Source: Pelomyxa schiedti (lineage: Eukaryota; Protista; Evosea). Taken from it: a stretch of DNA of 64,000 nucleotides. Shown here one piece after another: positions 2,330-32,480 of this stretch. A program made the translations under genes and the position numbers. Position 1 is the first letter of the stretch. Each line of letters starts with the position of its first letter. Below the pieces are notes generated by a model, which made no database searches, was not told the DNA's origin, and saw only the letters and a program-made list of their open reading frames with translations. The stretch spans positions 1 through 64,000 of the forward strand of contig JAHLWZ010000682.1 of NCBI GenBank assembly GCA_020536535.1, in the 5' to 3' direction.

Positions 2330-5300
2330 TTAACTTTTCTTTTTATCTGTACTGCTGTGCGTGCAGCTGGTCACCTTCGAGGAAGGAGCAAGAGGTATGG
2401 TATGGCTAGCAAGGCTTCCTTCCAAGTGCAGCTCGAGACGGGTGCAGCGGGCAACAATATCCTTTACAGTGGCCATGATACGAGATCTAGCATCGGAAGC
2501 AGGAGCAGTACCGGGCAGTAAAAGGGGGCCCAGCGTCAGGTGTGTCAAGGAAAGAAGGTGTCTGGAAATGGCAGTAACACCAGCATGGCTAACGTTTTTC
2601 AGGTGAAGCGTTGAGAGTCCGGCGCAGTGGGTTGCCAAGGCCGAAGCATCTTCGTTCGAGAGACTATGAGACAGAGTGAGAGATGTGAGTGATGGGCACC
2701 AAGGAGCTATTGATGATACATCCGCAGTGGAAGAGGCACCCAAGTGAAGGGAAGTGAGTGTGGTGCACGGTTGGCATCCGAGGAGAGGGAGTGGGCTGGG
2801 GAGGCGAGGCGATTTTAGGCCCTTCAGGTGGTTGACTTCCAGATGCCTGAGTTTCTTGAAGCACGACGCAGCTCCACAAAAACTATTCACACTCATCTCA
2901 CTGCAGTGCAAATCGGCGAGAGCTGTGCATGACTTGGCAATGGCAACAATGCCAATAAGAGGGCACCTTGCGCAGGTGAGGTGAGTGAGGGAAGGAAATG
3001 AATAAGCAATGGTAACGCAGGTGTGATTCGAGTCCTTCTTGGTTGCCTTGCGGAAAGGAACTTTTAGGATTGTGACTCCACTGAAGAACTGAGAAATAAG
3101 TTCCGCAGTGGGTGTTTCTTTTGTGAAAGGTAGGATGTGAGGGATGATGCTATCTATGAGGTCATTTTGTGAGTAGAGTTTACACAACTCATTCAACACG
3201 CAAGCTTGCCGATTCTTGAACGCCTCACTTGCTGCCTCGAGTGCCAGCTCCTTTTTCAGTGTGCTTTCTTCAACCTGCGCGAGCATATGGCAAACGGCTT
3301 TGTGATTGCCCATCCTTGCCGGTATTCCAATCGAAACACCACCAGCTTTCTTCTTAGCGAGCCAGTCAATGACACGCTGCTGACCAGAAACGTGGGCTTC
3401 CACCGAAGCCTGTTCCAAGTCACCAGCAGTATAATTAATCAAGAACTTGAGCATCACGAGGTTGCCGTGTTGGGCAGCAGGCTCTGTGAGCAAGCGACAT
3501 ATGCAAGGTGCAATTTGCAAGGCCAAAAAGTTTGGCATCACGCGAGAAGCCTGCCACCCAACTGGTCTGATGCTCTTAAGGAATTTGTTAGTTGCATCAT
3601 CACCAAGCAGTGTCACTGCTTCAACAACAGCATCCAATCCAAGTTGAACACGCCACTTGTCACGTGTTGGGTAAGATGCGTCCCGAGACAAATCTTGCTC
3701 TATCTCTGGCTTGTTGGCCCTATAGTTGGAGTTGAACACTGTTAGCAGGGATCTAATGAATGTTTTTTTGATGCTTCTGTACAGAGGTGAATTGACGGAA
3801 TCGTGGATGAGGCCCGAAATGAACAGAACGAGGTTGCGCTCCCTTGGTGACCACTTGAAGGTTTTTTGTGACATTTTATCACTGAAGATTCCGTCCAGCA
3901 GTGCAGCGGCATTGGGTGCATTCCTTTTGCTGCAGATATGCCAAGCTGTGAAGAATTCTTCCAAAGTCTTGTGGAGGAACCGGAACCCATGGACATTAAT
4001 ACTCATATCCTTACAGCTGCACCGCTTTACCAACCCACAGCAAGAAGTGAGACTTTCAATTTGTTTGTGCATGTCCAGGTGAAAAGTTCCAGTCACGTCG
4101 TCAGCCGCGGTGCTTATAGTTGCGTTATAGGCCCTTTCCCTGAGAAGACGATTGGCAATTTTTGTGTTTTGGTGCCACGCAGCATCGGTATTGCGCAGCT
4201 TGCTTTTTGCACGGTCCCAGGCGTACCGGACAAGAAGTTTGAAGATTGTTGTCACGCTGGGGTTTGTGTCACCTTGCAGTTTGCTGTAAACAGTGCAAAG
4301 AATTTCACAGAGAAGTGGTGTTCCAGCCATCCTGCTGCGTACTGGGTTATCTGAAATAAATTTACAAACTCTATTCACACAAGCTTGTCGTTCGTCCGCA
4401 CTGTTTCCAAATTCTTGGACGTAGTTGGAATATTTTGTGATGTAGGTATTAATCTCTGCTGAGGTCCACTGTTGAACAACAGCTACGGCAGCACCAGTGA
4501 ATATTTGGTGTCGACGGTCGTGTCTTGATGTGACAATAACACAGGGTGCCCAATCTAGCTTATTGTGGACAAGATCGGACAGAAAACTCTCCCATTTCTC
4601 AGTGTCTACTTCTTCAAACCCATCAAAGACCCACAGGATAACCCTTGAGTGCGCAAAGATGTCCTTTATCATAATGTCATCAAGCATGAGAACACGTAGC
4701 AAATAGTCTTCAACACAGTCACGTAGATTCACAGGGCCGGGGTGCAGATGTGTTGCAATTCTGCAGAGCTCCCGCAATTCCACAACAATAATGGCTCCAA
4801 ATTGCAGCTTCATCTCAGCCGTTCCTTGTTCACGTGCCAGGAATTTAACCAGAGTGCTTTTCCCTGAGCCCGGGTCACCTTCCACAACACACCGTGTATT
4901 CCCAGTTCTTAGAATAGTACTCCACAGCCGATCCATTCCAAAGGTCTGTCCGAGATAACCATACCTATTGGCAATGGCCATCTGCAGGGAAGTGTAAAGC
5001 TCCGCAAATGGTGGGGGGTTTTCCATGTGGTCCAAGTGGTCCAGAAGAGACATGCGTTCGTACAGAACAGAGTAACGTATTGGCAGCGTTTGGCGCACAT
5101 TTTCTCCCAGAGGGTTTTGCCGAGAATTCAAGGCATTTGGGATTGCAACAGAGCGTTTTGCGTGTTCCAATCTCGTGATGAACCACCGCAATCGCGCCGA
5201 TTCGGACACAACGGCGTTGAACACTGACTGCACGATCCCCTCGACGTGTCGGGGTTCATACTGCAAGTTTGCAGTGGAACTCTGCGTGTGGCACAAGAAA

Positions 5301-6574
5301 TAGGCAATTGCGGGCTGCCCAGTTCTTTCAGGACGAAAAAACCGGCATCTCTCCTGAGGTCCAAATGGCTTGGAGAGCAGGTGCCTATCTTCTTCGCAAA
5401 TGCTTATGTGACCAGCTTTAACTGCAACTGCAAGTTGCTCAGTGCCTTGGGCATCCTCTGAGGAATCCATTACAAGAACAACATCAACACCACGACCATG
5501 GAGTGCCGGAAGAGGAACATTGAAGTCAATGCCCGCGTCTCGAAGGTTCCCAATACCCTCTTCAAACGCAGTTTTGCCGAACATTTCCCGTCTTTTCCGC
5601 CCGGTTTCTGGGATTGTGAACACGGATGGATGCAACCACTGGAGTATCATCGGCATTTCTGAATGCCAACCCCTCCAGTCCACTGCGAAGAAACTGCCCC
5701 AGACAGCCATCAAATGTGGAAGGGTGTCATCACTGAGGTTTTCAGTTGCCTTCACAGCGGTACCGCCTTTCCTCACCGTGAACGGCGTGAAATCAACCCA
5801 ATCCCAGCTGTCTTGTTCGTTTTCACTTATGGCAGTGCACACCGGAATTGGAAACGACCCGTCAGCAAGCCGATTCTTGCACTGGCTGAACCTCGCCGCC
5901 TCCAGGTGACGGCCACTCAGCACAACCTTCGACATGAACCGTTCCCATCCAGCCATCAGACTTAACTTTCTTGTTATGTAGGATCCCAGCAGGCACCCCG
6001 CCCCTGCAGGGGAGTATTGGCTCAGCATATTCTTGAGCTCTGAATGTGTGTGCCTCGCGGAATCAAACGGGGGCCCACCGGCCCGCCACGGATCGTTTTC
6101 ACGCGTGCCACCGTGGAATGGGTTGCCTTCCGTGTCACACACCCACTGGCTGAGGCACCATGTGCTTCCAGAGAGACCAACGGCGAAAGTAACGGCGTCC
6201 AGCAGGCCGATGTGGCTGAGGCCGTCCATGAACCCAACCATGCTCTGCAAGGCCCTCATCCCACCACCAGACCCGCATATCGCAATCACAAGTGGTTCTG
6301 CTTCCACTTGGTGTATGCCACCGCTCCCTGTTACGCAGGTAGTACTTGCACAACTGGCAGTTGGTTTTGGGGATGACGTTGAGCTTGTTGGTCCTGAGGT
6401 TCGCCCGGCTGTCATTGGCGCGTCCTTTTTCGAGCGGAAGAGTTACAATGAAGCAACGCAAATGAATTCACGTACCCGGTGCAGGAATTTATCGAGGGCT
6501 ACACTAGCCACTCGTTTCCGTGCGTTGATTGCTACACCTTCTTCAGAAACTCTCGAGTTAAGCAGTGCACTCAT
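2330..6574 (-). CDS. NLR-like STAND protein A: cPLA2/lysophospholipase catalytic domain - NACHT - ankyrin-like - LRR
   Basis: 1361-aa ORF plus an upstream exon 6574-6476 (intron 6475-6425, GTACGT...AAAG, phase 0). cPLA2 motifs: ICGSGGGMRA, GLSGSTW, LRDAGIDFNVP. NACHT motifs: GDPGSGKST, LWVFDGFEE, VIVTSR, GTPLLC, FLHKTLEEFFTA. Ankyrin-like AAQHGNLVMLKFL. LRRs such as LTSLTLSHSLSNEDASALATHCAGLSTLHL. Confidence 0.88.
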
Positions 6575-6785
6575 GAGGTCGGCCTCTAGTTGTTAAAATT
6601 TTTTATTTTTCTCTTTATCTTTTTGTGCACCTGGACAGAAGAAGTTAACAGCCAAACAAAATTTTAGTACAAATAGTAATTCCCGTAAACATCTGAGAGG
6701 GTTCATTGCCAATCAAAACCGGTATTTTTTTTTCCTCTTTGCCGAAAAACCTAGCCGTCAGGGATGCGTAAGAACTGAGGAAGTT

Positions 6786-9700
6786 TTACAGATGAAAGAC
6801 TTGCACACAACAGGAAGGACGAAAGGCGCGAACACGAGCGACTGCGTGCTGCAGACTCGGTCCCAGATTCATCCTGCAGATAGCGGAACAGCGTTGAGCA
6901 ACGGGGGCCAGGTCGATGTTGTCTCCAGGTGTTTCTTCCCGCAGAGTAAGATGTGTCAAGGAATGTAGGTGGTTGGCAATCGCGGTGACACCGTCCCTGG
7001 TGATTCTCACAATGAAGAGAGTGGTGAGTCCGGGGCAGTTCTGTGCCAAGGCCGAGGCACCAGTGTCTGTGAGACTATGATACAAAGTGAGAGATGTCAG
7101 TGCCGGGCACCAAGGAGCTATGGAGGACACATCCACAGTGGAAGTAGCACCCAAGCAAAGAGATGTGAGTGTAGTGAACGGGGGAGAGGATTCTCGGTCT
7201 TCTGAAGACCGCCTGCCCTTCAGGTGGTGGACTTCCAGATGCCTGAGTGCCCTGAAGAATTGAGCTGTAGCACAAAAACTATTCACGCTCATCTCACTGC
7301 AGTGCAAATCGGCGAGAGCTGTGCATGACTTGGCAATGGCAACGATGCCAATACGAGGGCACCTTGCGCAGGTGAGGTGAGTGAGGGAAGGAAATGAATA
7401 AGCAATGGTAACGCAGGTGTCATTCGAGTCCTTCTTGGTTTCCTCGCTGGAAGGAACTTTTAGGATTGTGACTCCACTGAAGAACTGAGAAATAAGTTCC
7501 GCAGTGTATGTTTCTGTTGGACCGGAGCCTTCATTGAAAGGTAGGATGTGAGGGATGATGCTGTCTACGAGGTCATTTGGTGAGTAGAGTTTACACAACT
7601 CTCTCAACACACAAGCTTGCCGATTCTTGAACGCCTCACTTGCTGCCTCGAGTGCCAGCTCCTTTTTCTTTTCAATACCTTCAACCTCCGCAAGCATTTG
7701 GCAAACGGCTTTGTGATTGCCCATCCTTGCCGGTATTCCAACCGACACACCACCGGCTTTCATGGAAGTGAGCCAGTCAATGGTACTACGCTGACCAGAA
7801 AGGTGAGCCTCCATCATAGCCTGATCCATTTCACCACCAGCATAATTAACTAAACGCTTGAGCATTGTCAGGTTGCCATATTGGGCAGCAGGCTCTGTGA
7901 GGAGGCGATATATCCAAGGGGCTATTTTCAAGGTCAAAAAGTTTGGCATCACGCGAGAAGCCTGCCACCCATATGGTCTGATGCTCTTCAGGAAGCGCTC
8001 AGTTGCATCATCACCAAGGAGTGTAACTGCTGCAACAACAGCATCCAATCCAAGTTGAACACGCCACTTGTCACGTGTTGGATGAGATGCATCGCGAGAT
8101 AGATCCGCACTAAGCTCTTTATAGTTGGTGTTATAATTAGAGTTAAACACTGTAAACAATAAGCCAATGAAGGGTTCTTGGATTTGCTTGATATAGTGCT
8201 TCCTGGAACTGTGGATGAAACTGGCAATAAACAAAACGAGATTGCGCTCCTTCGGCGACCACTTTGTGCCTTTTGGTATCGTTTTATCAGTGAAGATTCC
8301 TTCAAGCAGCTCTATGGCATTGGGTGCATTCTTTTTGCTGCAGATATGCCAGGCTGTGAAGAATTCTTCCAAAGTCTTGTGAATGAACCGGAACCCATGG
8401 ATATGAGGACCACCATCCTCAAGACTGCACCGCTTGACTAACCCGCAGAAAGATGCACGCCTCTCAATTGGCTTGTTCATGTCCAAGTGAAAAAGTCCAG
8501 CCAAGTCGTTGGCCACAGTGCTAACAGTTGAATTATAGGCCCTTTCCCGTAGAACACAAATGGATTCCTTTATTTCATTGGACCAGGTGTGGTCTTCAGT
8601 AATGCCGAGCTTGTTTTTTGCACGGTCCCACGCATAACTGACAAGGTGTTTGAAGATTGTTGTAACACTACTTGTATCACTTCGCATTTTGCTGTAAACA
8701 GTGCAAATTATTTCGCAGAGAAGTGGTGTTTTGGCCATTCTTGCGAGTTCAGGATTGTCTGAAATAAATTTAGACACGCTGGGAGGCAGTAACGCTCGTG
8801 ATTCGGCGGTGAGGCCAAATTCATTGACGTAGTCAAAGTATCTTTTGATGTAGGTGCTAATCTCTGCAGGGTTCCACTGTTGTACAATAACTGTAGTTGT
8901 GTCACTGAATATCTGGTGTCGGCGGTCATGTCTTGCTGTGACCATAACGCAGGGTGCCCATTCTAACTTGTTGAGGACAAGCTTTCCCAGAAAGCTCTCC
9001 CATTTCTCAGTATCTACTTCGTCAAACCCATCAAAGACCCACAGAATGTCCTTCGAGTGTGCAAAGATAAGTTTTATCATGTCGTCATCAAGCATGAGAA
9101 CACGTAGCAAATAGTCTTCAACACAGTCACGTAGATTCACAGGCTGAAAACTGTGCGGATGTGTTGCAATACTGCAGAGCTCCCGCAATTCCACAACAAT
9201 AATGGCTCCAAATTGCTGTTCCATCTCAACCGTTCCTTGTTCACGTGCCAGGAATTTGACCAGAGTGCTTTTCCCTGAGCCCGGGTCACCTTCCACAACA
9301 CATCGCGTGCGACCTGCGAGAAGAACAGCGCTCCACAAACGCCCTACTCCAACAGCTTTTCCAAGGCCACCATACCTACTGGAACCGGCCACCTGCAGAG
9401 AAGTGTAAAGAACAGAAAATGGTGGATGTGCCATGTGGCCCAAGTGGTCCAGCAGTGCCATATACTCGTATAACTCGCAGTAACGTTGCTTCAACACTGG
9501 ACGCACAATATCTCTCAGAGGACTTTGCCTGGGACAGCATGGTATGAGAGGTGTCACAGGAACAGAGCCTTTGGCCTGTTCTACTTTTCGAATGAACCAT
9601 CTTAGTGTCTCAGATTCAGAAATAACAGCATTGTAGACTGACTGCACAATCCCATCAACTTCTTGTGGTTCGTACTGCAAGTTTGCAGTGGAACTCTGTG

Positions 9701-11476
9701 TGCTGGCCAAGAAATACGCAATTGCGGGCTGCCCTGTTCTTTCAGGACGGAAAAACCGGCATCTCTCCTGAGGTCCAAATGGAGTGGAGAGCAGGCGTTT
9801 ATCTTCTTCGCAGATGCTGATGTGACCAGCTTTTACCGCAAGTGCAAGTTCCTCAGTTCCCTTGGCATCAGCTGTGGAATCCATTACAAGAACAACATCA
9901 ACACCACGACCATGGAGTGCCGGAAGAGGAACATTGAAATCAATGCCTGCGTCTCGAAGGTTCCCAATACTCCCTTCGGTTGCTGCGGCACAGAAAATAG
10001 GTTTTCTTTTCCGCCCGGTTTCTGGAACTGCAGAAAATAGTGGAAACCAGCCGAGAATTGTAGGAATTTTTGAGTGCCAGCTCTTCCAATCGATAGCAAA
10101 GAAACTGCCCCATACGGCCATCAAATGTGGAAGGGTGTCATCACTGAGGTTTTCAGTTGCCTTCAAAGGGGTTCCACACTTCCTCACCGTGAACGGTGTG
10201 AAATCAACCCAATCCCAGCTGTCTTGCTTGTTTTCGCTGATGGCAGTGCACACCGGAATAGGAAATGATCCGTCAGCAAGCCGATTCTTGCATTGGCTGA
10301 ACCTTGTGGCTTCCATGTGACGGCCGCTCAACACGACATCCGACATGAACTGTGACCATCCATCCACCAAATTCCCTTTGCTTGTCATGCATCTCACCAA
10401 CTTTGCCCCAACAGCCGTAATTGAGTGCTGGCTCAGCATCTTCTTGAGTTCTGAATGTGTGTGCCTCGCGGAGTCAAAGGAGGGCCCGCCTGATCTCCAT
10501 GGGTCGTCTTCGCACTTGCCACCGTGGAATGGGTTGCCTTCCGTGTCACACACCCACTGGCTGAGGCACCACGTGCTTCCAGAGAGACCAACTGCTAAAG
10601 TAACGGCATCCAGCAGGCCGATGTGGCTGAGGCCGTCCATGAACCCAACCATGCTCTGCATTGCCCTCATTCCACCACCAGACCCACATATCGCAATCAC
10701 AAGTGGTTCTGCTTCCACTCTCTTCGCTCCTCCTCGTTCTGTACACGTGCTCGTTGTACACGCTGGTGATGAAGTTGATTGTGATTCTGATTTCGAGCTT
10801 GATGCAGAAGCCGATGCTATCAGTGATGCTGATGTTGTTGAGGAGGTAAATTTGGCTGAAGTGCACTGGAGGAAAGGCTTATGTGCTCTCCCTTCACTTC
10901 GCAAAGCTGTTTGTTGTTCTTCATTGGGGTGAAATTGGGAGAAATTTGTGTGGGTACAAACCTTGAGGTGTTTTGACTGGGGCTTTTCCTTTGTCATACC
11001 ACCGTTGCAATCTCAAAGCTACTCAGAATTTTAGACAAAAAAAAATACGAGAAATGCAAGTAACAGTAGGAAGGACCTAGCTACCTTCCTGCAGCTTTCG
11101 TCGATGTTGCTCAGCGGCCTCCTCTTCACTAGTCTTGGGACGAGAGTCCTCATCGCTACTGCTACTGCTGCTATCATCGCTATCATCACTCTCTCGTTTC
11201 TCACTAGATGTGTGTTTCGTAGGCCCAGAAAAGCTGCCATTGGTGCTGGTTTTTAGTGTCAGGGGGTCTGACACCTGCTGAAAGTGAAAAAAAAAAAAAA
11301 GTAAGAGCAACAACGTGTCTTTGTCACCAAATAAAAACAACAATTGAAGGCACCTTTCCTGGATCCTTTTGCAGGAACTTTTCAAGGGCCACTCTGGCGA
11401 CGATTTTCCTTGCCTTGATTGCATTATCCTCCTCTACTATTGCGTTTTTCAGTGTGGTGCTGCTTGTTTTGTTCAT
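6786..11476 (-). CDS. NLR-like STAND protein B, tandem paralog of A: cPLA2 - NACHT - ankyrin-like - LRR
   Basis: Carries the same motifs as A, with a canonical Walker B (VFDGFDE). Manual model: exons 11476-11354, 11277-11085, 11018-10962 and 10906-6786, joined by GT-AG introns in consistent phase. Confidence 0.88.
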
Positions 11477-14149: not shown

Positions 14150-16481
14150 ATGCAGCAGCCGTTGTTGGAGCACGAGGCAGTCCCATCAAATGCGACATCT
14201 GCGACACCACCCGCGACAAATACTGACGTTGGCGTTGTTACCAAAGAGATCTCTGATACTCCAGGCACGAATACAGCAACACCTGCTGTGCGTGGTGAGG
14301 GGCCAGAAGATCCTGCGAAATTGACCGCCTCAGAAACTACACAGAGTACCGCGGTTTCTGCTACGACTTCCTCGACTTCGGCAAGTGCAGAGGAAGTAGC
14401 TGTGCCACTGCACTCTGCGAATATACCAAAGTCGGTGCTGTCTTATGGCAACTTGCACGACACGTCGTTTGTACTTGACAAACTTCGGTCTCATCTCGTT
14501 GTTTTAGTAGTGGTATGTTGGCTTTGTTAAATCCGGTCATTCATTGCCAATACATTTCACTAGGACTGTGTGAACTGCAAAATACTACTAAGAATGAATC
14601 AACGGCTTTCAATGATCCTCTTTGTACGATGCCGGTTTGCACAGCACACTCCTCGTTGTTTTCTCTGAAATGAGCCCAGAAATTGTGTAATAAAACTTCT
14701 TGACTCGGCTGTGGTTACATCCCGCACTTGTAGAATAGTTGATTGCTCTAAGTGTGATTTTGTTTTTGAAGGTATCTTCCCTGTGAATTCTATGTCTAAT
14801 GCAACCAATTTTCATAGATATTGATACCCGCAAAGTCGAAGTTTTTGGTACCAATACTTGTAAGTTTATTTTCATTGGGGACACTGTATTACTCGAATCA
14901 CAGTTGGTAATTTGGAGAAAAGGTTACCTTTCAAACAACCCAATAAAACTGAATACTGTTTCAGGGTGCACTAATAATACCATTGGCATAGCCGAGATCA
15001 CTTCATGTCGCACCATTGATGTCCAGTATGAAGTTAATTTTCCCTCAACTGGCGTTCAGTTTACGTCCTCCAGTGTGAAATGACTATCCCTGCCCCAAAT
15101 TGTTGTGGGGAGTCACAGTGGGTTTCCAATATCGACACTGCGCGTAGTATCCACCATACTCTCTTGCGTGATTATGCGGGGGCATTCGAGCAGCCAGGTC
15201 TTGCTGCCATCAATGCTGTCCTACCTTTCATAAAAGCGTCCCTGCCAAGGGATGAAACACACCATAACAGTGCCACATCTACCGTTACAGGCAGTGACAT
15301 TATTGCTGACATTACCGAGCTAGCAGCTGTACCTCCACTGCCTCAGGCAGTCATTGATCATGCATACGATGAAGAAAGACGAGAGTATCTTGAACCACTA
15401 GCTTCTCTTCAAGAAAAGGTAATATATTTCACCGGGCATTTAATTTATTTTGGCCAGGCTGCCCATGTTGCACAGCTTCTCAGGGCTTCCAAGCACACAG
15501 TAGTGTATTCTGGTGCTGGGATAAGTACTAGTTCCGGTATTTAGATCCTGCTTCACTCACTTGTTGTTTGACCTATTACAAGGTATTGGGGATTTTCGTG
15601 GCCCAAAGGGTTTATGGACTTGCTCCGATAAAGTACCGAAATTCTCTCAGAGACAATCACTAACCTACGAAAGGGGACGAAATGCGAAAGTAAAACTTAC
15701 ACTGATGTTTTACCTACATTTGCACACTATGCTATCACCGCCCTGGCAAAAAAAAAACTTGTCCATTTTGTTGTTACAACAAATGTGGATGGACTTCATT
15801 TACGAAGGTCAGACAACCCTGCCAATTCAAGTTCTAAATATGCACAGTGGTACACCTCTCCACATGCTTGTGGAGTTACATGGCTGTTGCTATAAAGAAG
15901 TCTGCACCAACTGTAAAAAGGTATTCTTTTGTCAGGGCAGCAAATTTTGTCTCATAAGGAACAAGGTTTTTCTTCGTGACTATAATGTATTCCGTGGAAA
16001 GAACACTCGTAGTGGTCATCTTACAGGAAGGATGTGTGACTTTTGCCGTTCTCCACTTGTGGTATTTCACTGTACTATACCGAGCAACATTCATTTTCAC
16101 TGTAGGAAACCAGCGTAGCTTTTGGAGAAACTTATAGGGATCCTGTTGATGCCATCAGGAGCGCATATCATGCCCGCAAGGCTACGTTGGCCATTGTTCT
16201 TGGTACATCAATGAATGTTCAGGGAGCTGCATCGTATCCAGAGAAAGTATGTATCCCACCCTCACATATGCCCTCCAAGAACAACAAAACAGGCACTGAG
16301 AAATCAAGGTGGTAGCATGATTCTTGTAAACATGCAAGCTACTCCCTATGAGTCCATTATAGGCACTAGGGTATGGGCGCGCATTGACGATTTCATGAGG
16401 CTCGTAATGGAGAACCTTGGCATTACTGTTTCCTGTGAATGTGACATGTTGTCTGAATGGGCAGGGAAATGGAGTGACTAA
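14150..16481 (+). CDS. Class IV (SIRT6/7-like) sirtuin with an N-terminal extension (spliced)
   Basis: [55 protein letters not shown] and IVLGTSMNVQGAASYP spread over several exons. Confidence 0.88.
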
Positions 16482-16779: not shown

Positions 16780-19700
16780 CTACAATCTAGTTTGTTTTGT
16801 GTGCTGGTAAAGTGAGGGGCATTGAGGTCTGAGGGGTGGTGGTGTTGGCAGAGAAACCTGTTGCTGTGACTGGTGTGTGGTGGTGGGTGATAGTGGAAAC
16901 CTGGGTATCTGGGTTACAGAGGTGGGTGGAAGAGCTGCGGGGAGTGGCTGGAAGGACCTGTGGGGAGGAGGAAGGGTGCTGGGCCGTGATTGGAGTTGCA
17001 CCGGAGCGCCGACCGATTGCATGGGCAGTGCTCCTGGTGGCGGGAGCGGCAGTGACATGGCTGGCTTGTTGCACTGGAGAGGTGGGAGCTGTTGTTGCTG
17101 TGGTTGTTGTGGTTGTTGTGGTGGTGGCGGCGGCGGCAGTACCTGTCCGCGTTCGTGCGTGGATGCGGGTGTTGTGTGTGTGCGTGCTTGTGTGGGTGAT
17201 GAGTACGGGGGCAGGAGGCTGGGGTGGGGGAGCGGAAATGTGGGGGGGCCAGAGCCTACGACGGGGACTTGGACGGGCGTATTTGCTGGGCCGCTGTTAC
17301 GGAACTGCGGCGGCGGCTGGGGCAATGGGGAAGGAGGTTGTTGCGGAACAACGGGAGGAGTTGGCTCCGCCAGGGCGCGGAAGGGGGGGGTACCCGGGGG
17401 CTGTAGTGAGCTGAGGAGTGGTGGTGCTGGTGCTGACTGGAACAACTGGGGATTGGGGATACCCTGCTTAATGGTCTGTACTGCAGGAGGCGGGGGTAGG
17501 ATGGATGTGAACGTGTTGGTTAGCGGGAATTGGCCGTTCTGCTGTCGGGCATGCACTGCAGGGGGGAGTACCGATTGTGAAACTGCTGTTGCTGTCTGAC
17601 GAGTTGGGGGATATTGCACTGGTGACAGTCGAGGCAGAACCGGACTGGAAACTGGCTTGTCGGCTGCTGGGCCTGGCATCTTACTTCCTTGGTGTGGAAG
17701 TGGAAGTGAAAGTAGAGGCGACTCACTGCATTGCAGTGGTATATGCTTAACCTCTTCAGATACACTCTCATGTGCTTTCATAATCTGTTCGTAGAGGACT
17801 TCGGATCTGTGTACAGTATTTGCCAGAGGTTCCAATAACTCATCTAATACTTGTAAATCAGTCTGTAAATCCCTGAGTTCAGTTCGTTCATTAAGTGCGA
17901 CACGTTCGAGAATTCTCTGCCATTGCTGTTGCCACTTCTGTTGCTTGTCCTCCGCACTTCTTTTAATTGTATTGAACTCGTCAATACATTGTCTCAGTGT
18001 AGAAGTTTTTTGTTGAATTATTGCCTGCCTAGCTGCACTTCCACATATGAGATTTTGTAGGTTCACAACTGTGGTGCTGAGTGTGCGAGAGCTATTTTCT
18101 AATTTTTCAACAAGAGTACTATATTGCACTGATTTCTTGTTTAGTTCACTACGGGTATCCTGTGTATTAAACCCTCTTCCAGGGTGAACTTGGACTGGGG
18201 TTGCATCAAGAGTGGCCGAGTCACTGCAGAAGGAAGCATGCACTTCAACCTGTGTTATGAAAGAAATCAGACAACTTTTTTAAAGTACTTGTACATCCAT
18301 ACTTCTTCCTGGGGAATGAGCTGCCCACACAAAGGGCACTCTACCTGCCTGATATCGAGTTTAGCTATTTGTAGCTACGGAGAAATGAAACATACAGGGA
18401 ATGATCTAAGGGTACGGCATTAGATGCTGCAACAGGCAGAAGGGACTCTGGTTCATTTTGCCGTGATAGCTGTGGTCTGAGGAAACTGGGTTGTGTCTGA
18501 TGTAAAGGGAGAGGTGGGTGCGGCTTTGCCGGCTCAGCAGCGAGGAGACTGGGGGCTGTGACTTGCACTTCGGACTCAGTTGGTGCTTTATGCTTGGGCA
18601 AGTTAGGTGCCCATATTTCAGCTAACTTCTTCATTAGGGTACTAGTTTCATATGTCTGTAGATAACGTCTCGTTTTTTGTGAAATATCTTTTATTTTCTT
18701 TCTGTTACTCAGGTCAAGGGGAAATTCATCGAGGTCTAACATCGGATTAAACCGGAAATAAGAAGTACTTGAATTGTTAAATCTCCGACTCATTTCTCGG
18801 TGTACATTTTCAGAGTCACTGACAATAGCAACAATATCTTTCACCAATACTGAGCCTATCCAATGATTTTGAGGTACTCCGCCTATATTGGTTGGCAGTT
18901 TTCCAGTACCAATGGATACGAGAGCGTGGAGTGTTGCCTGTGGCCACAGGAAAGAGGCTTCAGCTTCTGCTTCATTCGCTGGATTATTGGCACCAACCCC
19001 ACCATCTATGTACTGCACCCCACCAATAAGTTTTGGAGAAAAATAAGACGGAGCTGCTGACGTGGCTAATGCACCGTCGAGAAGAGTGAGGTCACCAGGC
19101 GGAGAGGAGCGTGACTGAGCAGTGTCAGGCCTTTGATAGCTGCGAAAAAGGACAGTCTCTGGTCGACCTTGTCCAATACGAGTGGATGTTACACAAACCT
19201 TCGGGAATGTTGAGGAGCATTGAGACCAGGTTCTATGTGGTGGAACCATGGTAAGAAGTAAGTTTTGCAACATTGAACTAGAATAACATCCCCCTGTTGT
19301 TGCCCAGTTGACAAACTTCTTGTACCAGCTTGATCCAAAGAGTCTAGGACCAAGTTCCATGTAAAATGAATGCAGTATATGCAAATCAATTTTTAGTAAG
19401 CCTAGTGCAATGGCCAGGATCCCTCCTGTACTTGTTCCACAAATAAGGGTGAAGATATCCCATATCTTCTTGCCCGTCCTACGTTCTAACTCCATCAATA
19501 CCTCAATCTCAACTAGTCCCCGTATACCACCTCCATCAAGGCAAAGTATATTATACTTTGACTCAGGCAAGACAAGAGAAAGTTGTCGTGCAATTTCTTC
19601 CAATGAGTCTATGACAGTTTCCATTTCTGGCCTTCTGGGTGGCTCCTGGTGGCTCATTTCATGCAAGAGTTTGTAGTATCTACTATGCGGTTCGGATCCC

Positions 19701-22698
19701 GGGGAGTAGACAGTTTGCCCGAGCTCCTCTATTGCTATACAGGCTTTCCCTAAGCTATAGAAGTCTACTCTATAGTCACTTGTGTTGCTGGAAAGTTCTG
19801 GGGCGGCGTACAATGCTGCGTCATTTGAAGGATTAAATGAACATTGAAAGTAGTTAAAGAACGCCTCCCCACTTGCGTTGATAAAAACGTTGTCCGGAAC
19901 GAATATTTTGAGAGTGATTCCGTGCCTGTGAAGAAATGTAATAACATTACACAATGTGATAACTTGCTGGACACGAGTGAGGCAATGGTACGGTAACTGT
20001 TTGGATTGCGCACGAAATGATTGCCACGTGTGGGCAACTGCAGGAAAAACCAGGGAAATATGGGTCATACCATCAGAAATCCTGAGGTACTGCAACGGGA
20101 GGATGGACCCATGATTAAGTGCCCATTGAGTCATTATTATCTTGTGTATTTCGGCAGTTTGATCCTTGGAAGTGTGGGTCAAATCTACATTTGTCACAGT
20201 GACGGTAGATGTGACTGGTTGTAATGGTGAGAGGAGGTAATCTTTAAGTACTCCTCTGGTCCCATCAGGTCCCACTTCCAGTACTTGGGGTTGTAATTCA
20301 TAATGCAGAGAAAGAAGACATACGCCTGTTCCTAAAAGTTTTTCTTCACTCCAAGTAGTACTTTCTTGTCTAGCACTCTTGCATTCACAAAGAAAGCTAA
20401 TTTGGGCTCTCAATTCATTGATATAGTTGTCACAAAAAGATTTCATCGTCTCTTTCATTTTGAGTTTCAGTTTGGGCACAACATCTTTGACAATTTTCAG
20501 AGTTGTGTCACGAGAAATTACAGCCATAGTCATATTTGGAATCATAAGTGGCTCATAGTGTACTTGTGGTACTTGCGAGAGAAGCGCTCTATAAGATGAT
20601 AGAACTAGTCGCACCTTTACGTTCCAGGGATTATTACCATCAATTCCAGAACCAGCGTATATACCAAGTTTAGTAAACGAGAAGTCAGTAGATAGAGCCG
20701 CAAGTTGATGGTGAGTATTAAATATTCCCTCACACTGCTTTTCAAAGAGTGCAACAACGTCTCGTGAAAAAGAGTGGAAGCGGTCTTGGGTTAGCATCGT
20801 TGTCACTTTTAAACGTATCCGGGAGCGTCGCATTAAATGTGTTTCGTTCTCCAGACAATTTTGTGAGTCATTGAGCAGTTCATGCTCTATTTCATCCACC
20901 TGATCAAAGAATTTGCAGTCTGGTTGCTCCAGGTAATCAATGAACGAGGCGACATGTGACTCAATGATCCTGTCCATCATTTCAAGAGTACCATTAAAAG
21001 AAATTCTCAGGTCAGTTTCAGATCTCAGTAAGTTAGCCTTAATGGTAGCAACGTTTTCGACAAGGGAGTTTATTGATAATAGAGATCTGGTCACTTCGAG
21101 AAGAGAAGCAACTGTAGCACACACTGAGCGCTTGAACAAATATTTGAGCCAAGAAACGAGCTTGATATGAAATTGGAAAATTGCCTTCGGCGCTTTGATT
21201 ATTGAAGGTTCTCCCTGGGACAAGTTGAATGCTTCCAGTGCAGAATACGGGGCGAATCGATCAAATTTAATGCTATCTGTATGTTCGGTAACCCCCCCCC
21301 CGGCGCCATCCACTATGCTCTTCACCCAATCAAAGAATGTTTCCACTGGTGAAACGTCCCCAGGGACACGCCTTATCAGGTCGAGCTGGTTCCCAACAAA
21401 GAATATTGTTGAGATGTCCAATTTGGTCTGGTTAATTATGTCAATCAAAAATGATTTCTGACGGAGTCTCCCGGCAGGGTTCTTCAAGCTGGAGAAAAAA
21501 TTATTCCCAATCGACCTCTTTGGCGTTCAACCCACTCTTCCACAACTTTACGTAGTTTCTCTTCTTCTTCCAATCCAGGGGAGTCAATAAGCTGTACACC
21601 GGCCTCTAAGAGAGGGTGCGGCCACTTGACTTGTATTTGCTTCTTCAAGAAATAGTCTAGAATATCACCTTTGCTATCCCGTCCAAAGACTGGTAGAAGA
21701 GAGGCACCTTGGAGGGTCACAGTTGGTACTGCCGAGAGCGGCTTCCATTCTTGCCACCTTATCATTCCCTGGTGATCTGGGTCTCCGATTCTATAACAGG
21801 GCTCAGCGCCATAACTGATGGTCGTCATGCACACGGTACAGCAGGAGTCCCAAGCGGGTAACAGAGGAGCCTCAATAAGAGAGTTGATGAACATACTCTT
21901 CCCAGATTTTGTCACACGAGTGACAAGAAGAGTGACATTTTCTAACGAAGTAGGCAAACTTTTAGATGTATCCTTAGCATCCAAATACCTCATAAGAGTG
22001 GTCCTTAACCCAGAGTTTTGATAAGATGTCGCATGCAGCTTCAGAATCTGTGTGAGTTGCCCAGATAATCTCTTCACCTCCTTTTCGCTTGCTACTGATG
22101 CCACCCCCCCCGGAGCTCCTTGAAAACTTGAAAAGATTTCTTGGCCACTTCGGACCTCGCAAATCCCAGCATCACTCTCACCACCGCCGAATGGGTTCCG
22201 AAATCTCGCTCGAATTTCGTAGGGACGGGCGCGGCCGCGGCGGTGCCACCGGAGCTACCGGATGCGACTGCCGGAGTCGCCTCGTCAGTTTCATCCTCGT
22301 CAAGACCTGCGAACTGCTCCAGGGTCGAGAAAGACTGAGCGACTCTGGCCGCCGCACTGCACACAGTTCCTTGGTCATACCCCCGAGTACGACACGCCGA
22401 CGGTGCTGGAAAGCCATTGTGGGATGGCCATCGTCGCCAGGTCGGCAACAACGCTCCTCAGGGCCACTACGTCCCTTGCGTTTATACGGCACTCATGCTG
22501 GGTTCCAGGTGTCTGCAGTGCTGAAAAAAATGGCTCCAGCCGGCCACCTTGCTGTTGGTAGACCTGAAGAATGCCTCCAATCTGCGGGGCCGAAAAACCA
22601 AGCTCCGTGAGTCTCTGACAAAGTTGCTGCTCTGACATCAATCGTGTTGCGTCGGACGCAACTTGCGTCTTTTGGTTTCCAAAAAAAGGAAACCGCAA
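16780..22698 (-). CDS. Multidomain protein: UBA-like - degenerate dynamin-like GTPase - helical region - pseudokinase - patatin (PNPLA8-like) - UBZ-type Zn finger - coiled coil - Pro/Gln tail
   Basis: ORF pieces 22698-22375, 22451-22092, 22104-21484, 21487-18365 and 18243-16780. GTPase motifs VTKSGKSMFINSLI, IDSPGL, FFVGNQLD. Kinase-fold remnants YAAPE, VDFYSLG, PPRRP. Patatin motifs DGGGIRG, GTSTGG, DGG. Two GTATG-donor introns near 18395-18190 give CPLCGQLIPQEEVEVHASFC. The 5' junctions are unresolved. Confidence 0.75.
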
Positions 22699-22839: not shown

Positions 22840-25800
22840 TCATGATTTGTTGCTGGAGGATGGTGGAGGGCTTGTGTCACTCAGGAGTGGGGAATATGTT
22901 CCAATGTCACCAGAGGACTTTAGAAGTGGGTGCCTGAAAGGCCTCGTGTGTTTGGTTGGGGGTGGTGGGTCTGGTTTGGTGGGCTGCTGTAAGTTTAATG
23001 ATGAGGTTGTTGTTAGTGTTTCTACTGGCGTTTGAGATGATGTTTCAGCTACCGCGGTGTTAGCTGCAGCTACTGCTGTTGGTTCCGCCGTGGGTGTGGA
23101 GGCAATTTCCAGAGTGTCACAGCCACTGGGCAGGGGTGACGGTACTGGAGTTGATATCAGCCTGGGTGATGGCGATGGAGATGGCGATGGTGATGACGAA
23201 AGCAAAGGGGAGGGTGACAGCGAAACAGAAAGTGAAGGCGACGGTGAGGGTGAAGACGAGAGCGACGGGATGGAGTCCTGCGAGCTCGACAGTTGAAGTG
23301 CCTGTGCTGTCCGGTGCTGCGGCGTGGGCGGCAGCGGGTGCTGGGGCTGCTTCCTGTGGACGTGCGGCGAGCGCGCTTGCGTTGGCGAGTGTGGCGGCTG
23401 GGCCGGAGCCACTGGGGTCGCGGCAGAAAGGGGCTCTGAGTGCTGCTGCGGCTCTGCTTGTTGCTGTGTGCCTTGTGGTACCTGTGGCTGCTTTTGGTCT
23501 TGGCCTGGTGTGGGCGGCACTTGCGGCTGGGCTTGCGTTACCTCCTGTATCTCTATGCTGCTTGAAGACAGAGACAGCGGCACTTGCGTGGGTTTTACTG
23601 GTGTCTGTGGCAGTGTCTGGGATTGCCGAGTGGGGGTTGATGGTGGGGCAGTGGGGGGTGGGGCGACTGGGTGCTTTTTGGGTTGCTTTCTGGTAAATCT
23701 GCCGAAAAACGATGTTGAGGCCGCTTGGGGCATCTGAGGGGTGGTTGCAGGCGTGGGTGTAGCAGGAGTAGGAAAAAGAGGGGGGGTGGCGATTGACGGG
23801 TTGGATGAGGTAACTGGCGTTGGAGAAGTTGATGATAGGGGGAGAAGTGGGAGGGGTGGTTGCTCAGACGGTGTAGTTGACAAAAGTTGGGATTTTGGGG
23901 GAGGCACCGGGGACAAGGTGGGTGACGTTGATGGAGAGGGTATAGGCGAAGCCACGGACAGTACGGACGGAACTATTGGGGTGCTTTCTGTTGTTGGCTG
24001 TGAGGATGTCGAAGTTACCGGAGCTGCAACGGGGGTGGAGGTTGAAAGTTTTGTTGTATCACTACTGAGAGTTCGTTGGTGAAGCATAACGGGTAACGCG
24101 GACTTTGTAGGAGTTGCAGCAGGGGTAACTGAAGGCCTTAAAGGGCTGGAAATTCTGAGTAGGTGGTTAGAGGTGACTAACAGTTTAAAGACGTACTTGA
24201 GATTCACTGAACTTGCACTTCTCATTATGGTAAAGTGACTGTGATCTACAGAGGCAGCATGTTTCTTATGCCCCAGGGAAAAGGCAGATGTGGAAGGAGG
24301 TTGTGGGGGTGTTATGGACCATATTCTGGCAGTTGAGTCCCGAGAGGCAGATAGAATGCGCAATTTACTTGGGGCATAAATAGATGTGAGCTTTATTTTT
24401 CAGTTAGCTTCGTATAAGTGGACTTCTTTCGCCTCACCCGGTCATCATGTCCCCTAAGCTGCTTCATGCAGTCACCATTCAGTGTCCACACTCTAACAGT
24501 CTTATCTTCACTTCCTGATACTACCCTAGCATTTGTGATTTGAAGTATTGTAATCAAGAGAGTATACCAGCCATCCACACATGTCAAACAGGTCACTTCC
24601 GCAGAATGACCCCTTAAAACGGCACAACAATTTGGGGATTCAGCATCCCACACGCGAATGACGTTGTCACCTGATCCAGATACAATTTTGGATGACAATT
24701 TATCGACGACGAAGCAGTTCACACTTCCTTGGTGACCTGTTAATGTGCGGGTACACCTCCCAGAGTCTTGAATGTCCCAGCACTTGACGGCAAAAGGAGG
24801 AAATGTTAGTCCACAGAAATTCTGCTCATTAGGTCACCTTAAGTGTGCAATCATAGCTTGCACTTATCACAGTTTTAGAGTCAAAAAGAACTTGGGTAAT
24901 AAAGTCTGTATGGCCCTCAAGTGTATACAGACATTCCATTTTCTTGATATCCCACACCTACATTGCTATGAGAAGGAGAACGCAATAGATCCTGACCTTA
25001 ATTGTATTATCGTCACCAGCAGAAACTATGATAGATGAAGGAGCATCCAAAGTTGATTCAGTGAGAGTTCTTATGGGACCCTTATGTCCTATAAGAGAGT
25101 TCACAGAATTGGCCATTCGCATGTCCCACAGACGAACAACATTATCAGCACCACCACTATACAAAATGTCAATATCACAAGGTTGTGAATAAAATTGTTT
25201 TCCTGGCAACAATTGAACTACGGTGTAAAATCGAAGAATAAATTGGACCAACATGGCCTTTAAGCTCTGAAGTACATTTGTGGTTGCTTGGGTCCCATAC
25301 CTTGTTATAGCTGTAACAATGCAACAGGAAAGTTATAAGTGATACCCTTAAGGTACTGTCACACGATGAGCTCACAATAGAAGACCCAAAGTGCACTGCA
25401 CTTACCTTCAAAATGTGAGCTCACTAAATAGAAATCTCGTTTTGGTTTTTGTACCTTATCTGTATGTCCTGTCAATTTACTTATGAATTGCAGAGATTCT
25501 GTATCCCACAGACTTATAGGACCCAGTGTACTGCCACTGAGAAGTATGTGTCCATGCATGGATGTGCAGGAGATGGGACCGATTCCTCCTGTGAAGAATG
25601 GTTAAATGAAAGAATAAGATGCAGTTAGTACTCACCCTGCAATGTTGTAACCGTGAAGCCGTCTTTTTTTTCAGGACCAACAACACCCAATCCAGTACTT
25701 TCTTTCTCATGACTGAGAATCTGGGAAGATGACAAAGGCTGTTTAGTGGGGTGGGTCTTTGGGTCTTCTTTAGACTTGGTGGCTGGTTTGTCAAGTCCTT

Positions 25801-30645: not shown

Positions 30646-32480
30646 TCACAGAGCCACGTTGTCAAAGATGAAGAAGTCGAACTCCGAAGAGGGCTGCCGG
30701 TCGACGACGAGGAGCTGGTTTGTTGACGAGATCCACGATGTCAGCAGCACGCAGGTGCCGGAAGTCGGGAGTGTGTTTCTGTAAGTGCCATCATAAACAC
30801 CAGTCGCGGTGTCATACACCCCATTGATCTTCCTGCTGTTGTGTGCCTTTCCAAAGTAGAACTTCCCACACACAACAAATGCAAAGCCTGTCTTCCTCTT
30901 GACGCGTGGCACCACCCACGTCTGCAAGATCGCGAGGGAGTCGGGGTCCACCCTCGTGATGTGTGTGTTGCCGTTGTTGGGTGGTGCGTGCACCACAAAC
31001 AGCACACCCCCAGCGTCGACATGCCAGCAAATATCCGTGTACCCACCCCAGCTCCACGACGATTGGTTTGCGACGCCGGCGTTGGGGAGTGGTGCAGTTG
31101 CCACTGTCGATCCATCACTCACACGCACCTTGGTCATGGTGGCGGCGTCGCGAGGGTTGCAGTACACGTGGCCGTTGTGCACTGCCTGGCAGGTGCCGCC
31201 GGGGCTGCCGGGCAAGTCCTTGAGTGTGAATTGTCTTGGGTTGGTGTTGCTGATGAAGCTGGTCATGCTTTCGAATTCTGAGAGTTCCTTACGATTGTAG
31301 TTGGAATCCCAGTACACTTTCCCGGTTGCGTTGTCGACAAACACCCTGAGTGCCTGGCGAGGTGTGATGGAGGGCACCATCGACGTGCCAAGCTGTTTGA
31401 GCGTCCTCGCCGTCGTTGTTGCGGGTGTTGTTGCCTTTGTTGTCACTGACGTCAGTGAACTCGATGCTGAATTGTGAACAAGTTTTCCCAGCGAAGAGAC
31501 TGCACCACAAACAGCAGCTGATTCGCACTCAAGGCTCACCTTTGGGTTGTTGTCATCAGACACGGTTTTTTTGGGGATATATATATATATATATGGGATG
31601 AACAGTTTTAAAGAATTTCATTGCCAAACATGCCTTCAGTTTCTGTGGAGTTGCAAGATCATCACGGGATTTGCATACACTCTCAATCTGTGCTGTGAGT
31701 GCTTGATTCACTGAAACAACCTCGACATCGGAGAACAGTGTCGTTGCTTGATGTGCATATTCCTGTGCCTCTTGTGCGATCTTCAACCTCCGATCGCATC
31801 CCTCGATGTGCTCTTGGAACGTCTTCAAAGTTGTTTTTTTTTGGTTTTTTTTTTTTTTTTTGGTGTCAGTGAAATTGAGAAAAAGGGCAACTCTTGCCTT
31901 GTTGGCGGCTTCGTTGATTGTTTTCAGTTCAGAGAGCAATTGTGCCTCTCTGGCATTGACAGCACCAACGATCTTGGCAAATTCAGATCTTATTTCTGCC
32001 CCGATTTTATCTGTGGCTGCTTGTGCATTTTTGCGACACTCCTTTTTGTTTTTTTTTGGTTTTAATACCGATATCGTTTACTTGAACAGGATTGATTGGG
32101 CTTCGCACAATTGCCGTGATTTTGGAATTTGTGACTTGCTCCAAGTGCGACGCCAAATTGGAACAGGTCGAGGCAATCTTCTCCTTGAACTTGGAGCTCA
32201 GGTCGGTGACAAAAACCAAGTCGTGGTTCTTGTGCTCAATCAGCCTGATGATAAATTTTGGTTTTTTTTCAAAAAGATCGAAAGAGAGNNNNNNNNNNNN
32301 NNNNNNNNNNNNNNNNNNNNNNNNNNNNNNNNNNNNNNNNNNNNNNNNNNNNNNNNNNNNNNNNNNNNNNNNNNNNNNNNNNNNNNNNCATGAAGTGTGG
32401 CCACTTTCTTCTCTGGCATTTTTTCGCTTCTCCTGACCTTCCTTATTCCTTGCATAGATTTTCTCCAGACGCTTGGCGGT
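30646..32480 (-). CDS. B-box/coiled-coil protein with a C-terminal olfactomedin (OLF) domain; the 5' part is interrupted by the N-gap
   Basis: OLF motifs GTCQAVHNGHVY, LPNAG..WSWGGYTDI..VDAGG, ITRVDPDSLAILQTW, FAFVVCG. Upstream exons give a B-box end (EHKNHDLVFV) and a TRIM-like coiled coil (IRSEFAKIVGAVNAREAQLLSEL). Confidence 0.72.
32289..32388. other. Assembly gap (100 N)
   Basis: A run of exactly 100 N, a scaffold placeholder. Confidence 1.

Follow-up and report, generated by a model that had tools for sequence, protein, structure and literature searches.

A gene on the minus strand of the Pelomyxa schiedti contig JAHLWZ010000682.1 (assembly GCA_020536535.1; the 64,000-nucleotide stretch analyzed here is called the window), running from 22638 to 16780, is a genuine, transcribed, lineage-restricted multidomain gene of this amoeba, in which known domains are joined in a new combination. 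Read from 5′ to 3′, it specifies a Dynamin_N GTPase, a helical region (the "stalk"), a dead kinase fold, a patatin-type lipase, a zinc finger, a coiled coil, and a Pro/Gln-rich tail. The explanation we prefer, to which we assign a probability of about 55%, is that this gene belongs to a Pelomyxa-only family in which a lipase of the patatin/iPLA2/CapV type is chained to a mitofusin/BDLP-type GTPase, a stalk, and a kinase, that the copy in the window is a derived member of this family, and that the GTPase would control the lipase by a mechanism that we infer below.

The P. schiedti genome was co-assembled from seven single cells with whole-genome amplification and from Nanopore reads of a polyxenic culture (PMC8887013). 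The original prediction, made from the letters of the window, was of one giant fusion protein. The window holds no continuous open reading frame (ORF) of this kind; its coding potential on the minus strand, starting with the ATG at 22638, consists of four successive frame pieces (A, C, D, and E; Table 1), followed by two real, short introns and a last exon ending at 16780. The 1040-amino-acid ORF at 21487–18365 was 100% identical to the P. schiedti NCBI protein P0001 (1350 amino acids, "calcium-independent phospholipase A2-gamma"), and this model of the gene itself was the sole match in a word-indexed protein search with the ORF. An internal Met at window position 20980, inside the stalk, is the start of the NCBI model, which omits all sequence upstream of this Met. 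For comparison with the reference, Logan contigs from four runs were aligned to the gene, among them the DNA runs X1 and X2 and the single-cell RNA library X3.

Residues 645–958 of piece E matched the Pfam Patatin family (PF01734) with 86.3 bits against a cut-off of 27.7 (E 3.9e-24). The oxyanion motif DGGGIRG (19517–19537), the nucleophile motif GTSTG (19424–19438), and the Asp motif DGG (in DGGVG, 18992–19006) were all present, and profile and motifs together bear out the expectation of a patatin with its full set of catalytic motifs. The PADLOC profile of the phospholipase effector of the cyclic-oligonucleotide-based antiphage signaling system (CBASS) was matched at 1.4e-50, and CBASS effector profiles were matched over their full length, while the NCBIfam equivalog CBASS_lipase/CapV (NF041079) was not reached (147.2 bits; cut-off 200). 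CapV and iPLA2beta were the matches in the PDB, both at ~1e-18. The nearest proteins were eukaryotic, namely a Pelomyxa paralog, fungal proteins named "FabD/lysophospholipase-like," and proteins of stramenopiles and animals; some of the fungal patatin relatives also carry NACHT, NB-ARC, or ankyrin domains.

At the other end of the gene, piece D matched Dynamin_N (PF00350) with 40.9 bits (cut-off 27; E 2.9e-10; profile positions 3–128 of 168) and aligned with the paralogs described below and with a bacterial dynamin-type protein. The assignment to a GTPase of the bacterial-dynamin type therefore stands, with the motifs as they had been quoted. G1 reads RVTKSGKS (21918–21895), with Arg in place of the first Gly of GxxxxGK[ST]; G3 (DSPG, 21574–21585, in piece D) is kept; and G4 reads NQLD (21391–21380, in piece E), with Gln for Lys, where the paralogs have NKLD or NKVD and the bacterial relative has NYWD. 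To call this GTPase degenerate, as the original prediction did, was right for the first Gly of G1 and the Lys of G4 but overstated, since nothing else differs and the X3 RNA haplotype carries a change that converts the P-loop Arg to Gly. The G domain is not one uninterrupted frame in the window and in X1; X2 and X3 carry one more letter at ~21495.

When the G domain of a paralog was used as a PDB query, the best solved relatives were mitofusin-1 and mitofusin-2 (mitofusin-1 at 5e-4), Nostoc BDLP, and IniA. A search with the G-domain ORF of the paralog found only two weak dynamin-type matches outside Pelomyxa, one metagenomic and one from Deferribacter, and PADLOC gave no match of the G domain to a dynamin-type (Eleos-like) defense system. 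For the stalk, an exhaustive phmmer search of 1.84 billion representative proteins found no relatives outside Pelomyxa and returned only the paralog P0002; the best score in the ESM Atlas was 0.80, below the useful level.

The kinase fold occupies residues 400–640 of piece E. Its Pkinase match (17 bits, E 0.0042) lay under the Pfam cut-off when taken on its own. For this region, phmmer retrieved two genuine kinases from the same protein set (E 7e-5 and 4e-4, both weak matches), the kinase region of MkoA was matched at 1.4e-6, many weak matches to kinases in the PDB were obtained, and the segment aligned with the kinase of the paralog (Pkinase, 89 bits). In these alignments, the HRD position reads LKIFVPDN (19889–19912, with LKI for HRD), the DFG position reads NYF (19847–19855), and the β3 Lys is absent, the aligned positions reading Thr/Asn. 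The segment has a GPDGTRG loop and keeps PDN, APE, DFYSLG, and the Arg of subdomain XI. A kinase fold that lacks the β3 Lys, HRD, and DFG but retains APE and DFYSLG had been predicted, and the alignments agree. Judged by these residues, the domain is a pseudokinase rather than an active kinase, and since all three elements are lost, it could only scaffold or regulate. Of the proposed "two dead enzymes" serving as scaffolds, the kinase is thus dead by its catalytic residues, but the death of the GTPase was not borne out. A comparison with animal DSTYK had also been drawn; P. schiedti, however, is a free-living anaerobic amoeba and not an animal, and a literature search on DSTYK with dynamin gave nothing relevant in support of it.

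Two further P. schiedti loci carry related genes. The paralog L002 (contig JAHLWZ010001256.1) has the same order of GTPase, stalk, kinase, and patatin, the last at its end, with 29–49% identity along the chain, indicating that these genes form a small Pelomyxa family. A single 492-amino-acid ORF of L002 holds a canonical G domain (GQTNSGKS, DSPG, and NKLD; Dynamin_N 52 bits, 1e-13) together with the beginning of the stalk, and the kinase of L002 keeps HRD and DFG. The second locus, L001 (contig JAHLWZ010000433.1, protein Pelo_5400), is a truncated further copy. At 2262–2891 of L001, the Pelo_5400 model passes out of the GTPase stalk into sequence resembling reverse transcriptase, which points to an inserted retroelement or to a chimeric gene model.

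Both paralogs are continuous in one frame across the point equivalent to the window break at 21495, so this break sits inside one domain. Together with the shared order, this continuity shows that the GTPase–kinase–patatin order was inherited and did not arise by chance adjacency. It is accordingly highly improbable that two neighboring genes, one for the GTPase and one for the pseudokinase and patatin, have merely been read together. NCBI does annotate the 3′ part only, and no single RNA contig covers the whole gene; however, the break falls within the G domain and not between domains, the order recurs in L002, where the G domain and stalk start share one ORF, and the G4 motif and the kinase fold of the window copy lie together in the 1040-amino-acid ORF, with no gap from a stop to a new start separating them.

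We also looked beside the paralogs for a zinc finger, a coiled coil, and a Pro/Gln-rich tail and found none. By this comparison within the family, the copy in the window is a derived member, with a dead kinase, altered G1 and G4 motifs, and an added zinc finger, coiled coil, and tail. The GTPase–stalk–kinase part was found only in Pelomyxa by the exhaustive search of 1.84 billion representative proteins, and a literature search for dynamin–patatin–pseudokinase architectures gave nothing relevant. Although each domain is already known, we came upon no described protein in which a mitofusin/BDLP-type GTPase is combined with a kinase fold and a patatin lipase.

Three breaks interrupt the frame of the 5′ part. 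The first is near 22397, the second falls on a G8 run at 22104, and the third, at ~21495, separates G3 from G4. No intron of the sizes used by the gene (47 and 53 nucleotides) is able to repair these breaks, and the four pieces therefore do not form a single ORF in the window. Very short introns (21–27 nucleotides) were considered as joiners of the 5′ pieces and rejected because the confirmed introns measure 47 and 53 nucleotides and because splicing at the candidate sites would retain stops or fail to restore the frame. With frame-breaking changes in its first 1.2 kb, the reference has as its only long intact ORF the stalk–pseudokinase–patatin–zinc finger part represented by the NCBI model.

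In run X2, which is a second single-cell DNA library from the same sample as X1, one 5.2-kb contig covers 18224–22698. Compared with the window, it lacks two letters at 22104, has one additional letter at 21495, and carries in-frame insertions of 3 and 6 letters. Frame arithmetic places pieces C, D, and E of this haplotype in one frame with an ATG at 22172, so that it is open from upstream of the GTPase through the patatin. The RNA contigs of X3 cross both 22104 and 21495 with the same differences (−2 and +1) and contain a 5-letter insertion at 22397 that would connect piece A to piece C, as well as further single-letter insertions at 22523, 21446, and 21421. Template-switch primer sequence was present at the upstream ends of X3 RNA contigs (22616, 21649, and 20792), which shows sense transcription of the 5′ part; these ends are consistent with sense transcripts extending to the proposed start. 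From these results we conclude that the frameshifts of the reference haplotype are real and that the frame of at least one natural haplotype stays open across the GTPase and the lipase, although real allelic variation is not separable from amplification slippage at every homopolymer.

Several findings weigh against the explanation that we prefer. The X1 contigs match the window exactly over the 5′ part, breaks included. In X3, the insertions at 21446 and 21421 put the RNA contig out of frame, and there is also a stop in piece C. The 5′ 1.4 kb shows 16 substitutions and 10 length differences, whereas the following 3.9 kb, up to the tail, has 2 substitutions; because these 5′ variants are numerous and the coding changes are mostly non-synonymous, the pattern looks like relaxed constraint. 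Hydropathy analysis revealed no transmembrane segment or hydrophobic hairpin of the paddle type, and AlphaFold2, run without an alignment on residues 1–645 of the long ORF, gave a predicted local distance difference test (pLDDT) score of 34 and hence no fold evidence for the stalk or the pseudokinase. Finally, L002 itself changes frame with no obvious intron inside the patatin (5560–5610, where no GT..AG intron is available) and at the kinase end (4800–4900). These changes are either further frameshifts or assembly errors, and they indicate that locus quality or integrity in the family is imperfect in general.

Much of this evidence would also be expected if the window copy were decaying, with its GTPase end a pseudogenized remnant and only a truncated protein from Met 20980, or nothing, being made. 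We regard such decay as possible but rather unlikely. It accommodates the three frame breaks of the reference and their reproduction in the X1 contigs, the start of the evidence-based NCBI model at 20980, the P-loop Arg, G4 Gln, and dead kinase in a family whose paralog keeps all of these features intact, and the highly polymorphic, mostly non-synonymously altered 5′ part with an RNA contig bearing extra frameshifts. On the other hand, the X2 haplotype is in frame over both G-domain breaks, sense RNA covers the 5′ part, the P-loop of the X3 haplotype has Gly, and the codon-frame score still favors the ORF frames of pieces A, C, and D (for A only weakly). Pseudogenization of the 5′ part, which the original prediction had named as the outcome that would speak against it, thus describes the reference haplotype but not the second haplotype, that of X2, which is in frame.

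Downstream of the lipase, introns 1 (47 nucleotides) and 2 (53 nucleotides) were both spliced out in an X3 RNA contig. The zinc finger starts in the exon after the first of these introns and is finished after the second, with the spacing C-x2-C-x11-H-x3-C. Its PDB matches were the RAP80 zinc finger (2.7e-6) and the UBZ domains of RAD18 (0.019) and WRNIP1 (0.027). In Pfam, zf-WRNIP1_ubi reached 15.1 bits against a cut-off of 26.4, and Znf_XAF1_N also lay under its cut-off. The UBZ4 fingers of RAD18, WRNIP1, and RAP80 share the identical spacing and the CP-x-C start with the Pelomyxa finger, but RAD18 (HLDSC) and WRNIP1 (HLDRC) have Asp two residues after the His, where the Pelomyxa finger, scoring under the Pfam cut-offs, has Ser. 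In RAD18 and WRNIP1, this Asp is needed for ubiquitin binding. The best-matching finger, that of RAP80, likewise lacks Asp at that position, and to our knowledge, no ubiquitin-binding role has been established for it. With Ser at this position, the Pelomyxa finger may or may not bind ubiquitin. A UBZ-like finger after the lipase had been predicted, and the UBZ4 spacing of the RAD18/RAP80 type upholds this, whereas the profile cut-off and the conserved Asp do not.

The predicted ubiquitin-associated (UBA)-like N-terminus fared worse. For piece A, no Pfam match of any kind was found at E values up to 10, the best ESM Atlas score was 0.53 (below the useful level), and a Foldseek search of the PDB with its AlphaFold2 model (four helices, pLDDT 74) gave a best E value of 2.0 with no UBA among the matches. 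The UBA assignment is thus without Pfam, language-model, or fold support, and piece A is out of frame with the next piece. Piece C had no family match in a profile search, and neither A nor C resembled the upstream ORFs of the paralog.

These results bear on the earlier model, in which UBA and UBZ elements bracket a ubiquitin-sensing phospholipase that is activated in the manner of ExoU and attacks ubiquitin-coated vacuoles or microbes. That model now appears improbable. The UBZ4-type finger with RAD18/WRNIP1/RAP80 spacing followed by a coiled coil, the intact lipase resembling defense-effector profiles, and the presence of lipase–NACHT genes close by all fit it; yet the UBA call fails every test and lies out of frame, the finger carries Ser in place of the Asp found in RAD18 and WRNIP1 and is best matched by a RAP80 finger that also lacks this Asp, and the paralog lacks the finger. 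Since the finger is missing from the paralog, it would not be part of the core mechanism of the family. Ubiquitin sensing and an immune role are putative functions of the window copy.

The segment after the finger showed weak NCBIfam matches to HmpF and SMC (E 6e-4 to 0.07), and the tail beyond it contains 26% Pro and 13% Gln. An X1 contig has one more letter than the window in a C8 run at 17382, so that its frame would stop near 17300, and the NCBI model shifts frame in the tail through a predicted intron; the last ~200 residues are therefore uncertain. Separately, an X3 RNA contig ends at 18212 with 18 untemplated T residues on the plus strand, corresponding to poly(A) on a minus-strand transcript. 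This poly(A) site follows the first 36 nucleotides of the last exon, is not preceded by a stop codon, and may reflect premature polyadenylation or a library artifact.

On membranes, the self-association of mitofusin/BDLP GTPases depends on nucleotide, and patatins of the same clade as the one described here are the membrane-attacking outputs of CBASS and of fungal NLR-type proteins. The presence of a GTPase and a lipase on one chain suggests that the GTPase positions or licenses the lipase. In the family reading that we prefer, the GTPase and stalk would self-associate on a membrane depending on nucleotide and thereby position the lipase, the kinase would act as a switch in the paralog and the pseudokinase as a latch in the window copy, and recruitment to a tagged partner or membrane would fall to the zinc finger and coiled coil. 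The likely setting would be the control of phagosome or symbiont membranes, or cell-autonomous defense. We infer all of these steps, and the cellular role with them, from the domain composition. A more far-reaching version, which we consider quite unlikely, holds that the chain is a single-molecule machine for defense or membrane surveillance, consisting of a dynamin GTPase, a patatin executioner of the CBASS/NLR type, and a kinase switch. In it, the window copy would have been retargeted by a ubiquitin-binding finger to tagged phagosomes or endosymbiont membranes, and the high polymorphism of the 5′ part would be a mark of diversifying or balancing selection acting on the sensor end and not of decay.

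Table 1. Features of the GTPase–pseudokinase–patatin gene in the window
Feature	Coordinates	Strand	Remarks
Piece A	22399..22638	−	ATG-initiated ORF including the "UBA-like" LTELGF stretch; off-frame relative to the rest in the window and in run X2
Piece C	22095..22400	−	Acidic/Ala-rich open frame before the GTPase; stop just past the G8 run at ~22104; ATG at 22172
Piece D	21487..22104	−	N-terminal two thirds of the mitofusin/BDLP-type GTPase domain; 206 amino acids
Piece E	21487..18368	−	Long ORF: G4 motif, stalk, kinase fold, patatin
Frame break inside the GTPase domain at ~21495, then G4 in the next frame	21380..21500	−	Frame comparison
End of G domain and helical "stalk"	20291..21379	−	Contains the NCBI model start, Met 20980
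Pseudokinase domain	19568..20290	−	Motifs, profile and phmmer matches, paralog alignment
Patatin-type phospholipase A domain	18614..19555	−	Pfam Patatin; catalytic apparatus intact
Intron 1, 47 nucleotides, GT..AG	18349..18395	−	Joint in run X3 RNA contig; identical splice in P0001
UBZ4-type zinc finger	18225..18348	−	Split by intron 2 (18250–18302, 53 nucleotides); RNA joint
Helical, probably coiled-coil segment, ~130–170 residues	17700..18224	−	Weak NCBIfam coiled-coil matches
Pro/Gln-rich low-complexity tail and stop codon	16780..17699	−	Frame uncertain past 17382

Other genes lie around this locus. Two tandem ORFs of 1361 and 1403 amino acids on the minus strand (2330–10997), located 6–14 kb from the gene, each encode a PLA2_B lysophospholipase plus NACHT, an NLR-like arrangement with the lipase at the N-terminus. 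Just downstream of the gene, on the opposite strand, a plus-strand ORF at 15561–16118 matched the Sir2 family (E 9.7e-6; 26 bits, cut-off 24). The PLA2_B–NACHT genes and the SIR2-like ORF are compatible with a defense-type neighborhood, proximity being weak evidence in a eukaryote. In the upstream neighbor (22840–24722, minus strand), WD40 repeats precede a Ser/Thr/Pro-rich region of 500 residues; its end at 22840 is ~200 nucleotides before the ATG. Farther away, an ORF with an olfactomedin domain was found at 30646–31563 (minus strand; E 1e-28), and an ORF resembling the VPS13 N-terminal domain, below the cut-off, at 62647–63561 (plus strand).

If the chain works as a unit, it would be a natural case of a membrane-remodeling GTPase physically coupled to a lipid-cutting effector, and it would serve the study of how patatin executioners are restrained, for which the paralogs with live and dead kinases offer a built-in comparison. 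It may also bear on the policing of internal membranes in an amoeba packed with bacterial and archaeal symbionts. This value is tempered by the frameshifts in the reference copy and by the fact that function is predicted from sequence.

Among known systems, the CBASS effector CapV, which is activated by cyclic GMP–AMP, and the animal iPLA2 enzymes PNPLA8 and PNPLA9 share the patatin fold, the oxyanion motif, and the Ser–Asp dyad motifs with the Pelomyxa lipase. CapV differs in that the Pelomyxa patatin lies below its equivalog cut-off, has eukaryotic nearest relatives, and has no known cyclic-nucleotide signaling partner. Bacterial dynamin-like proteins and mitofusins have a G domain of the same family (Dynamin_N), but the Pelomyxa protein differs from them by its fusion to a kinase fold and a lipase and by a stalk with no detectable homology. 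In the GBP/IRG immunity of animals, the dynamin-superfamily GTPase acts as a separate protein. In fungal NLR-type proteins with an N-terminal patatin effector, such as PLP-1 of Neurospora, a related patatin provides the output of a large regulatory NTPase. In these fungal proteins, however, the NTPase is of the NACHT or NB-ARC type and the lipase is N-terminal, whereas in the Pelomyxa protein, the NTPase is a dynamin-type GTPase and the lipase is C-terminal to it.

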